Shown here: one piece after another, positions 12,285 through 18,400 of the stretch
How the letters are laid out: every line of letters starts with the position of its first letter
Numbering within the stretch: position 1 is the stretch's first letter
Origin: Glycera tridactyla
Lineage: Eukaryota
Assembly: GCA_965644265.1 (NCBI GenBank)
Contig: OZ286463.1
Location: forward strand, 105,214,001 to 105,278,000
Length of the DNA stretch: 64,000 nt
Direction of reading: 5' to 3'
The notes under the pieces: model-generated
The model's database searches: none
Told to the model about the DNA's origin: nothing
What the model saw: only the letters and a program-made list of their open reading frames with translations
Made by a program: the position numbers and the translations under genes

Positions 12285-12462
12285 TTAGCCAAACATGGAG
12301 GTTACCATTTCACCCGGGAAGGCGTAGAAAAATAGAGCTATAAATGCGATCAGCAAGAGTAGAATGAAGACTTTGAGGATGAGCCATTTATAATTCTTCC
12401 AAATGATGTATTTCAAAGTCTTCAGCGGGTTCATAAACCAGAGGAACGACGAATCAGGGCGG
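12285..12462 (-). CDS. OTOF: Alternative terminal TM exon C (...[32 protein letters not shown])
   Basis: atttcag acceptor, phase 2, intact to TAA; translated by hand. Confidence 0.9.
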
Positions 12463-15400
12463 CTGAAATATCAAGGACACGACAGAGATATATTTATATT
12501 TTCATTCTGTACATTCAATCTCTAACAATAACATATATAAATGCCAGGAAATTGAATAATTCTGTGACCAATCCAAGGATGAGGATGCCATGACGATGAT
12601 GAGGAGGACGATGATGACGATGAAGATGACAACGACTACGACATTGGTGATGGTGATGATAATGAAGAGGACAGTAGTGAAGATTATTACATCCTTGTTA
12701 GCGAAGATGATGACGATGACGATAACAATGACGGATGATTAAAAGTACGATTACGATTATGACGGTGGCGCCGACATTGATGACGATGACGATGAAAATT
12801 ACGATGACCATAATGATGGTGANNNNNNNNNNNNNNNNNNNNNNNNNNNNNNNNNNNNNNNNNNNNNNNNNNNNNNNNNNNNNNNNNNNNNNNNNNNNNN
12901 NNNNNNNNNNNNNNNNNNNNNNNNNNNNNNNNNNNNNNNNNNNNNNNNNNNNNNNNNNNNNNNNNNNNNNNNNNNNNNNNNNNNNNNNNNNNNNNNNNNN
13001 NNNNNNNNNNNNNNNNNNNNNGGCGGAGAAGGAGGAACAGGACGAGGATAAGCATGATAAAGAAATGGTATACAAAATAGCGAGGCATATATCAAAGCTG
13101 CAAATGGACATGTATTTCCTTTCGAATATCATTCACAAGTGAATCACATAAATCATGTATGAATGTCCGCGTTATTTCAGTGTCAAATCACACATAAGTA
13201 GCAAATGATCAAGTGAGCGTTCGAGCAAAAACACAGCAAATACCACAGTTTTCTATATATGTATGAGTGCATAAAAGACATGACTTAAAGTGCTTTTCTA
13301 CACACAGGGAGGAGGATAGTAAAACCACACAGAAACACATAGTACATAAACACCATGAGAGAAAAATATTTGACTACACTCATGCCGGGTATACGTAATA
13401 TCGCGTGATTTCAGATCCCTGCTACAATTCTGGGATTTAATATGTGTCATGTGATGGTATGGAGGTAATCCTCAGTTTCTTCACATGGCATGTATTTCAC
13501 ATGCTGGATGGGGCTCAGTTCTATCGAGTATCATTGAGTTCATTTCGCCAATGACGTAGGGGCACTCGAAAAGACATATGCTCTTCAGTACCATGACCTT
13601 GGTAATTGAGAGCGGCCCAAGGATTCTGACTGCACTCACCTATTGGTGAAATGAATACCAGTCCTCATGCGGTGATTAAGTTTTTCCACTGGGCAATGTC
13701 ACAACATAGACGTCAAATTCCACTCAGACACATTGGTAAACTAAGCTCTTTGCATGCTAGCAACACTGATTGCAAACATGAAGACATACTATACTATGGT
13801 GTAGATGTATATGAGTACATGTATCATCAAATGTAATTGTTCACACTCGAAGTCAGTGTGTCATAATGACTTGCCATGCTTTCATGAGAGATGTTAAATG
13901 AAATGAAAAAAGTTTAATTTATGGGATATATGAAACTGAACGAGCACACAATTCCAGCGCTTTGTATTTATGCCATCACTCACAGCCACTCGCTACCCAG
14001 AATGATTGTTCTCATAACAGGGACAAGGTTTTGTTATACCCCTGGTTGAGATTCTTGATGAAGAAAAGTAATCTTCCCTGATTGGTAGAGTCCTGTTCTT
14101 AGTAGCCTAGTCACTTGCTCAATTCCAATGTCACGCTATTCAAAAATATTCATCATTGCTCCAACTTTTCTCTCTTCCTCTTACCAAAATACAACATCAA
14201 AATATCCGAATATTTCTTATCTTGGCATAGGTATAAAACATATGCGTCGAAAAAGTATCACAATATCTCACTCGTTGGAAGAATGTACGCGATACCAACT
14301 CGTGTAACAGAGTGTGATTCGATACCAAAGATCATGCAAAATCAAAGTAAATTGATAAATGATAAAATGAATAAACCATGCATATCACCATGTCCAGCTC
14401 ACATTAAGTACCAAAGATCTTGTTGACCGACGCCCCTGGCACGGAGTAGAGGACGAGTGCAATGAAAGCAATGAGTAACAGGAGAAGGAAAGCTTTGAGG
14501 ATCAGCCACTTGTAATTCTTCCAGATGATGTATTTCAGTGTCTTTAAAGGATTCATGAACCACAGGAAGGAAGAGTCGGGCCGGCTGAAAGAACATAACA
14601 TTCGTTGAAAATTATAACATCAGTAAATATCATCTGCTATATGTCGAAAGCCTTCCCATACCTGCTATTATTTTTCTCATCTATGATCATCTCTGTGCCA
14701 GTTAACTATTGTAAATCATCGGTAACACTACATCAGTAACACTACATATATGTAGTGGTTCGAGAAGTTTCGGTCCCCATAGTATGGATGGAAATCAGTG
14801 AAAGTGTTATAGCCTAATGTGTTGAGTGTGAGAACTGTTGAGTGTGAGAGATTTGATCGGAAGGGAGAGAGGTGTGCTTGCTAATAATTTCTTTTACTCC
14901 GAGTATGATTGAGATTCTCATGATTCCTCTGTACCCATTGGATCATTTTCTCGACGGTGAGTACCAGACTACAGTCGATTCGCCTCCTGTGACATCCGTT
15001 ATTTGGCCGGCATTTCCACGGTGATTTTACCATTATGCCACTGATATGAACACTGACATTTACGTTGAACAAGGCGTTCACACTGCCACTCACGATACAT
15101 CATTATCAGTGTCTATTACTGACGCCTGGACAACTAATGATTTGATAAGAAGATTCACATACTCATCATATGACGTCATGACGCTGATTATGACGTCATA
15201 AAGCAATATGTCGGGTCAGACCAGTCACCCACTTCTGATGGATGTGGTCCAATGTGGCTTCTCTATTAGAAAGTTTCGGTTGAGCGGGCATTTTGACAAA
15301 AGCAGTCTGTCTGATTATGTTTTGGTCAAAAACAATCGAAAATATACGCGAGGAACAACATAAGTAATGCTGGTTCTGAGAAATGATTCGAGAATTGCAG

Positions 15401-18400
15401 ATGTCACAGGAAACGGCCAACCGACTGTAGTAAGCCATTTCGGATCATTCGTTACTTTGGTATTGCCGCCATTCTACTAGATTCTGAACATGCTAGAGCA
15501 ATCACAGGTAGTTAAGACATATGAATTATGACGGGCGATATATAACAGGTTTGAGAAAGTTATTGTATAATATATTCGATATATCCTGTGTTATCCATTA
15601 CTTATATAAATGTCATGCAATGTTAGTACAACGCACCAGAAAGCAAGGCAAATGTTAATTGCATCATACCAATAGCTCGGTTATATAATAGTATCATCTA
15701 GCCATGCACAATGTATGGTCGGTGTGATCGTTTTTCTTTCTTCAAATTTTCGAGTCCATAAATCAGATTGTTGTCGATTGTGTGTGAATGAACCTTTTCC
15801 AGCAGGTCCAGCGGCTTCGCAATCACATTCCCCAACGGCCTCTTCAAATATGAATCTCCGCGAGGCATATGAAAGCACAAATATAGGCATTACTACCAGC
15901 CATCTATAAGTGTTGTCAGTACCAATTAGGAAGTACCTATTTTCAGCTAGGTTAGTTGTTGTTGAGTATTGATTGGGGCGAATGCTGTACAAGTTGGAAA
16001 GTTTGCTTCGTTTCTAAAATGGAGTATACTGTGTATACAGTCATTCAATATTTTGAATGTTCGATATGGGACAACAAGGATTCTGGTGACAGATGTAGCA
16101 AGCAGAGTAGAAGTTCACAGTCAGAGGCGTTAGGCTGAGCGAGGGATATATTAGGATGGCAGGAAGCATATACTAAGTAATGGACGGATAATCCTGAGAA
16201 ATGATTTATTCAGTTCAGTTTGGTCAGAACATAAACTGGACGATGATTGTGTATGATTCACTCGGGATGGTAAACATTGATTTCGAAACTGTTGAGGTAT
16301 AATTATGTAAAGAAGTAGGTCTATTTATGTCAAATGTTCATTATATAACAATCTAAAAAACATTGATTTTGTCATTATTGAGTATCCCATTAACCTATAC
16401 AAATAAGTGAAACTTCAAGAATACAGCATGTTCATCTAGTAGCTAGAGCAGAATGAAGATGTATTCTCAATGCCAGTTCAACCTAGGCGTGCATTCTCAG
16501 TATATCAATCTAGAAGAATGTACTTGAGAAATACCTGCGGAGAATTGCTCAGTTCTTATTGGCAACCTACCAATGTATGTTAAGAAGCCGTAGTGGATGT
16601 ATTCAAGCCTTGTAAGGATTATTTGCGATTCAAAGCATATTGAGAGGATGACTGTTCATTACAGAAGCAGGCTGGGCATTTGAGGAAGATCTATGCCTTA
16701 GATACCTTGGGTCTACGTTCCAAACATTTTGTCGACCATGGCACCAGGGAAGGCATAGAAGAATAGCACCAGGAATAAAATGATGAGCAGTAAAATGAGC
16801 AATTTCAGAATGAGCCATTTATAGTTTTTCCATATGATGTATTTGAGCGTCTTCAGTGGGTTCATGAACCACAGGAAGGAAGAATCCGGCCGACTGAAAA
16901 TAAATAGATAATCACTTGATTGATGTGCCTGTCAAAGAGTGATAACTGGACCGGGTTCGACTGGTCGACACTTGTAGCAGCTTGTCAACAATCTAGCGGT
17001 TTGCTCGTCACCTTGTCGCCACATTGTCAACTAATCCGGGACATTCCCGCGAGCGTGTCTCCCCCTTGTCGATGACGTCAGCCCATCCCATCTCTTAGAA
17101 GGGCGATGGTCCCGCCATCTAGATCGACCAATCACCGACAATTTCACACTAAGCACATTCGCCAGATACTCCCACGACACAAACACAGGAGCGACAATAT
17201 TGCTACAATTTCGAGCCAGCTAAACCCGGTCCTGGAGTCTCAGGGCGATGTTAACGAGTATGTATACACATCCTAACACAATATGAAATCTTCTCCCACT
17301 CTATCGCTGCACGAACCTGTCATGATGGCTAATTTCACCGTGGAATTTGACTGAAGTTTGACTGAAGTATCGACTATCTATTGACTTGTTTCTGAGAGCT
17401 ACACGTGGGCTGATATTTCCTCACACCATTACTACATCCACTCAAATTACGAACTTTATCAAACGTGAACCATCACCGAAATCAACACATGCGGGAACAC
17501 CACTCTGTTCATCTGCCACCTAGGCCACAGGCTCCTGTCTTGCCATCCCCACCAAGAGAGAAAGGGATGGCAGCAGTTGGAAAATCTGTTCAAGTTATGT
17601 ACATGTTATATATTTTAAACCTGACTCCATTGACGGGAAAGTGTCGGCCAAGGACTGACCAGAGTCATGATCTGGTTGATGTCCGGAATCAGGAAATCAA
17701 CTGCCAAACCATATATTTCAACCATCCATAACTAGTTCGCAGTATTGGATGGAAATTGAATCTATGGCGGTTGTGATAAAGCTCTCACATTTGCTTGTAA
17801 AGAGCATGATTCCAGCCCGCAAGAGACCAAGATGAATATTAGACTTTCTCTGATGACCTCAGGGCTGTAGGTGGTAGATGAACAAAGTACGCGGTGATCC
17901 CGTATCAGTTTTCACAAAAATAAAACTCGAAACCTATTGCGTTCACAAAAAACCAATCACCAAATGAAAGAGTGTGCCAATAATCCAGTATCATTTTTCA
18001 ATGATGAGAAGATAATTCCGCCTCTAAACTCATTAATCTTGATGAATAAATAATAAACTTTTTAAAGAAGTAGTGATAGAGTGTCAACCAAACCACCTGT
18101 GTGTACGTGAGTTCAACTTTTAAAGAGTAAATTGAATGAGAACAGATGTGTATCAATAGTAGCAACGAAAAATATGCCGATCCAGTCACACATTCAATCC
18201 ATATCCAACACCTTGTATGTCGTAAAATATGACAACTGATCTGAAAAATGTATCTCATGCTGAGGCTTTCTATCTTTCGATTCTGAGATTGCGAGCGGAT
18301 CAAGATAATTATCTCCAATACAATTCCAAAATACGTCGTGTGTCGCAGAATTACCAGAGTGTCATACTTGAATTCTACTGATTACAGAGGTCTTCAAACA

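Follow-up and report, generated by a model that had tools for sequence, protein, structure and literature searches.

How many membrane anchors can a single ferlin gene supply, and which of several tandem last coding exons does it put to use? This question is raised by a stretch of 64,000 nucleotides (nt) from Glycera tridactyla (GCA_965644265.1, contig OZ286463.1, positions 105,214,001 to 105,278,000 of the forward strand), which as a whole is called the window here. On its minus strand, an otoferlin-type ferlin gene carries three tandem copies of its last coding exon; we named the copies A, B and C in the order of transcription (A 16893-16713, B 14584-14404, C 12462-12285). We consider it rather probable that the locus represents a three-copy otoferlin anchor switch, in which copy A is seen in RNA as the tail in use and as a cassette exon, while the use of copies B and C is deduced from selection.

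Three copies of a ferlin anchor exon

All three copies are preceded by a pyrimidine-rich tract and a CAG acceptor. The first base of the exon (T in A, C in B and C in C) completes the AA at the end of the penultimate coding exon (19333-19233, minus strand, GT donor at 19232-19231), which results in an asparagine codon in three out of three cases. After this split codon the reading frame continues for 59 codons in A (16892-16716, TAG at 16715-16713), 59 codons in B (14583-14407, TAA at 14406-14404) and 58 codons in C (12461-12288, TAA at 12287-12285). An initial annotation of this DNA had described three copies at these positions, each with a compatible acceptor and its own stop; all of this was found as described, and the peptides and codons it quoted are exact. 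Positions 99-154 of the Pfam family Ferlin_C (PF16165) are matched by A (E 5e-15), B (E 9e-13) and C (E 2e-13), all above the cut-off. As the exon 19333-19233 covers positions 65-97 of the same family, also above the cut-off, its join to the copies is collinear.

Each tail carries a hydrophobic stretch of 18 residues with a mean Kyte-Doolittle (KD) value of 3.1-3.4, followed by 14-15 further residues, and the tail sequence can be aligned to that of dysferlin (PDB 9b8k). The tails differ in the composition of the helix and in their luminal net charge, which is 0 in A, +1 in B and -1 in C in comparison to +2 in the common VKK-type tail; the VKK motif is usual in ferlin luminal tails and is lacking in all three. 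The pairwise nucleotide identity of the copies is 72.6-77.5%, and a self-comparison revealed similarity of the exons and a few acceptor bases only. A translated search identified no fourth copy in the window, in which an assembly gap of unfilled Ns (12823-13021) may hide one. The best candidate at 18580-18485 is full of stops and was discarded, and the other matches were at chance level.

An otoferlin-type ferlin gene on the minus strand has its 3' end at this locus. It combines a Ferlin_C region with a single transmembrane anchor and, upstream on the same strand, a multi-C2 body. Using tblastn, residues 352-2063 of a full-length ferlin from the annelid Owenia fusiformis map collinearly to 62793-12288, and because this map starts at residue 352 the gene extends past the upper end of the window. 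Among solved ferlins, one C2 exon scored 78 bits to otoferlin versus 54-58 bits to dysferlin and myoferlin. The best named relatives are all annotated as otoferlin (about 50-55% identity), and the closest named tails are those of a leech and of Owenia.

Copy A is a stop-carrying cassette exon

RNA contigs from four runs of one study (X1-X4, tissue not given), the only runs in which this DNA was found, were placed on positions 11400-17399. Their joints have GT..AG ends and stretches of the introns are empty, so that the contigs behave as RNA. The junction from 19233 to 16893 is visible as a loose contig end at 16893 that carries letters identical to 19233-19262 (30 bases). From there, copy A is present as an internal exon of 188 nt (16893-16706), which shows no difference from the window in the four runs, and is followed by a GT donor at 16705-16704 with 7 nt between the stop TAG and the donor. 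In all four runs this donor is joined to the acceptor of B (16706 to 14584, CT..AC on the plus strand), whereby the GT..AG intron at 16705-14585 is spliced out and 2121 nt are skipped; in run X3 the aligner had shifted this joint to 14586/16712, where four other letters are interposed. In run X2 only, the same donor is joined to the acceptor of C (16706 to 12462). In the RNA sampled, the tail in use is that of copy A, a cassette exon that carries a stop and is spliced onward in all four runs, to B in each and in one run also to C. This corrects the initial annotation, in which A had been taken as a terminal exon.

Downstream of its stop, B stays unspliced for at least 685 nt. This sequence (14403-13719) is located on the same contig as A and B and belongs to the 3' untranslated region (UTR) of an A-containing mRNA. 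AATAAA signals after B are found at 13918 and 13441, and further contigs extend to the edge of the gap at 13022. Transcribed sequence past the stop of C covers 12284-11400 (contigs 11400-12464 and 11500-12822) and continues below 11400, with the first AATAAA at 10743. These long unspliced 3' ends of B and C would also be expected if each copy were a genuine alternative terminal exon with a poly(A) site of its own and no splicing took place between the copies, and the individual stops and the AATAAA signals approximately 500 nt past the stops of A and B and 1542 nt past that of C are in line with such an arrangement. However, A is spliced onward at 16706 in four out of four runs, and the region 16000-16399 past A, including the AATAAA at 16210, has zero depth in every run. 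We regard alternative terminal exons as very improbable.

The interval between B and C is covered by RNA at about exon depth up to both edges of the gap (13022-14403 and 12463-12822, including the 360 nt before C), unlike the A-B intron, which is nearly empty of contigs. This coverage suggests that an intron is retained or that a long 3' UTR reads on from B across C. A sequence scan also revealed a candidate donor, GTGAGC, one base past the stop of B (14402-14397, minus strand). With this donor B could likewise act as a cassette, which would be 182 nt long and spliced to C; a matching joint was not present among the RNA joints listed.

The initial annotation had drawn a parallel to the alternative last exons of mammalian OTOF, and this parallel holds, with A as a stop-carrying cassette like exon 47 (PMC10394277). 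OTOF exon 47 carries a stop located at its end, so that exon 48 is then untranslated, and skipping of exon 47 leads to the cochlear anchor; the two anchors, TMD2 of the brain and TMD1 of the cochlea, localise differently in cultured cells (PMC10394277, PMC7768390). The homologous 3' coding exons of OTOF have also been listed among tandem-exon-duplication substitutions (PMC8373072). As in OTOF, the locus has tandem homologues of the same exon in a gene of the same family, each with a whole anchor and its own stop; copy A behaves in RNA as exon 47 does, being internal, and with A included the copy downstream of it lies out of frame and is untranslated. In contrast to the two copies of OTOF there are three copies here, and the donor of A takes either of two acceptors, B or C. 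Furthermore, skipping of the upstream copy is proven in mammalian OTOF, whereas none was seen among the RNA joints listed here.

We propose that the anchor and the stop would come from whichever copy is the first to be spliced to the exon 19333-19233, and that all copies further down would become 3' UTR. One tail per protein would then be due to the stop codons and not to strictly exclusive splicing. Nonsense-mediated decay usually needs a stop more than 50-55 nt before the last junction, and the stop of A, 7 nt from its junction, may be near enough to escape it. Classical mutually exclusive clusters such as Dscam1 or the exon pairs of ion channels also consist of tandem exon duplicates, of which exactly one copy enters each mRNA. 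The Glycera locus resembles them in offering one of several protein segments from tandem duplicates, but mature RNA holds A together with B or C, so that there are two copies per mRNA and the stop codon sets the exclusivity. Docking or selector-type pairing around the copies was not found, and 19 weak inverted intronic pairs look like chance. One of these has arms of 21 nt with 81% complementarity on either side of exon A (16429-16449 and 17864-17884). In principle it might loop the exon out, but as a sequence match without conservation support it may also be chance.

Selection on the copies and the possible use of B and C

Are B and C still used as coding sequence? In codons 1-30 there is no amino acid difference between the copies, whereas each pair differs in 14-16 codons synonymously. 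Counted in bases, each pair has 15-17 differences for about 18 synonymous sites, i.e., the synonymous divergence (dS) is saturated at a nonsynonymous divergence (dN) of 0. When an equal number of changes was placed at random, the peptide was kept in 0 of 100,000 cases. Each of the three copies has at least four private synonymous changes, and since these synonymous-only changes are found in every copy, all three lineages have evolved under coding constraint. The saturated dS further indicates that the duplications are old. In the membrane half, dN is 0.27-0.43 and dS ranges from 1.1 to saturation, and over all 58 codons dN is 0.11-0.17 with all frames intact. Purifying selection on all three copies, as claimed by the initial annotation, is therefore confirmed. 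Judged by their sequence, the copies are old and are neither assembly duplicates nor decaying relics.

An assembly artefact, in which haplotigs or collapsed and duplicated sequence had been joined across a gap, has to be weighed here, as a gap is indeed located between B and C. The gap (12823-13021) lies between the stop of B and the acceptor of C, 360 nt upstream of C, and because it falls in non-coding DNA no exon or frame is affected by it. The A-C joint from 16706 to 12462 bridges the gap and places C downstream on the same strand within the same transcription unit; RNA contigs run into the gap from both edges, and none among the contigs listed crosses it. The copies are only 72.6-77.5% identical, their likeness ends at the exon edges, the RNA joints A-B and A-C follow the order and strand of the scaffold, and comparable arrays are present in independent assemblies of other species. 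The initial annotation had thought assembly duplicates unlikely, and with these data such an origin is hardly conceivable. The gap itself was probably caused by the triplet low-complexity sequence on either side of it (12590-12822 and 13022-13100), which is rich in GAT, GAC and GAA on the plus strand. Over these flanks the contig depth is 100-600 versus about 10 nearby, and many contigs fit only partly, which indicates that similar repeats are common in the transcriptome.

Selection and the in-frame conceptual products lead us to assume that skipping of A in some cells or stages would give tail B, and that skipping of both A and B would give tail C. These conceptual products are in frame and terminate at the stop of B or C, respectively, and it is the selection on the copies that points to a translation of tails B and C. 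The resulting protein forms would have a juxtamembrane part of 31 residues in common but each its own membrane helix and luminal net charge (0, +1 or -1), which could alter insertion, sorting or luminal contacts.

Several points weigh against this use of B and C. The junctions to be counted according to the initial annotation are only partly present: the one from 19233 to 16893 is seen, but none from 19233 to 14584 or to 12462 was found among the listed joints and loose ends of the four contig runs. In X1 and X4 a single contig passes through A into B without a fork, which means that skipping of A is rare or absent in these samples. The A-C joint consists of one contig with 27 letters on the shorter side. 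Moreover, word searches and exact look-ups revealed no open reading frame of Glycera tridactyla with tail B or C. Contigs drop rare forms, and there are 32 loose ends beyond those listed, so that rare or cell-specific forms could escape. Finally, that the differences between the tails affect function at all is pure inference, and they may do so.

From these points one could conclude that only tail A is made now and that B and C serve as alternative 3' UTRs or terminal exons, with their coding conservation as a legacy or a result of very rare use. In agreement with this, all spliced contigs include A, B and C occur just downstream of the stop of A, and the word searches and look-ups found no B- or C-tailed reading frame of this species. 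But B and C have both kept 30 codons without an amino acid change in an intact frame, at saturated dS and with private synonymous changes in each, and such a constraint is hard to maintain without translation. A-like and B-like tails are also retained in the arrays of other species. In addition, the coding parts of A and C are free of the listed differences between RNA and window and that of B has one (14409), whereas many are located in the flanks of C; a further 65 differences are outside this list. We consider a gene that now makes tail A only to be unlikely, though clearly worth keeping in mind, and prefer the three-copy switch.

The variants in the RNA and one further reading frame deserve mention. 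At position 14409 all four runs have A on the plus strand versus T in the window, which changes the last codon of B from Thr to Ser; the residue affected is the one that copy C lacks entirely. In the 3' UTR of C, 26 bases at 11554 and 4 bases at 12123 are absent in all four runs versus the window, and these are indels between the sequenced individuals and the assembly. An out-of-frame ATG in exon A opens a frame of 97 codons in A+B and 96 codons in A+C transcripts (16818-16706 joined to 14584-14404 or 12462-12285), which past the junction coincides with the correct frame of the tail concerned. Although this frame probably just follows from the length of exon A (188 = 3n+2), no other route would allow tails B and C to be translated from the transcripts that were observed.

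Arrays of anchor exons in other animals

A profile of the three tails was searched against 1.8 billion representative proteins and the corresponding loci were then fetched. The search returned several short gene models with two or three tails in a row. At the DNA level, intact tandem tail exons were found in four worm-like loci, with two copies in L001 (GCA_029980185.1), four in L002 (ENA), five in L003 (a Logan run) and three in L006 (ENA), and in the amphioxus Branchiostoma belcheri (L007, 3718-11353), where seven copies lie within 7.6 kb. These five arrays, which are known from DNA alone, have the same acceptor phase and exon length as the Glycera locus, but copy number and order vary. A-like and B-like tails recur across the loci. 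A strong donor close past the stop was considered as a general rule and given up, because most copies of the other arrays showed no evident one in a crude consensus scan.

Some public gene models reflect such arrays in a distorted form. In B. belcheri, KAI8499153.1 and KAI8499151.1 string two and three tails of L007, respectively, into small false proteins. CAH1774768.1 of Owenia fusiformis contains part of a first tail exon, a frame-shifted stretch and then a complete second tail, and is probably a mis-modelled use of the second tail exon.

For the starfish Asterias rubens and A. amurensis, the otoferlin-like RefSeq isoforms have four different C-terminal tails. As in Glycera, this is an invertebrate otoferlin-type gene with several anchors, known there from annotation alone; the starfish tails retain the VKK motif, unlike A, B and C. 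Molluscs, horseshoe crabs, ticks and a fly have one tail among the isoforms listed. Our literature searches found no paper on tail variants of invertebrate ferlins, and the main ferlin phylogeny is without mention of them (PMC2923515).

The age of the duplications was addressed by a tree of 44 tails and 59 columns. In the free tree, A groups with the A-like tails of L001, L003 and the leech (87/82) and the vertebrate 47- and 48-type tails fall together (97/94), while B and C do not resolve among the B-like tails. The data did not reject a constraint that keeps A, B and C together (p-AU 0.25). A higher score than in the free search was obtained when the vertebrate 48-type tails were joined with two starfish tails. 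As 59 columns are too weak, we withdrew any claim on a shared or an independent origin of the duplications across phyla.

As vertebrates are known to use this mechanism and public data of several invertebrates contain multi-tail arrays, the Glycera locus is a further case of a known switch and not a new principle; the wider, repeated expansion of the anchor exon across animals is the more interesting lead. We tentatively put forward, as a possibility that we rate somewhat below even, that the ferlin anchor exon has been tandemly duplicated recurrently in bilaterians (two copies in vertebrates, four tails in starfish, seven copies in amphioxus and two to five in worm-like animals, Glycera included) and that all three Glycera tails are used in different cells, where helix and luminal charge would route one calcium sensor to different membranes.

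For annotation these arrays are a warning, since gene prediction may readily overlook the downstream anchor copies or fuse them into false proteins, and some public gene models show this. Mutations in the cochlear otoferlin anchor cause deafness, and what the anchor contributes is still unclear. In this respect, the natural sets in invertebrates, in which one ferlin body comes with three to seven anchors kept by selection, offer a comparison series for features of the helix and the luminal tail. The invertebrate arrays indicate that the anchor switch is not specific to vertebrate hearing, and if the proposed recurrent duplication and use of all tails is true, anchor choice would be an old and general way of tuning ferlins and not an oddity related to mammalian hearing.

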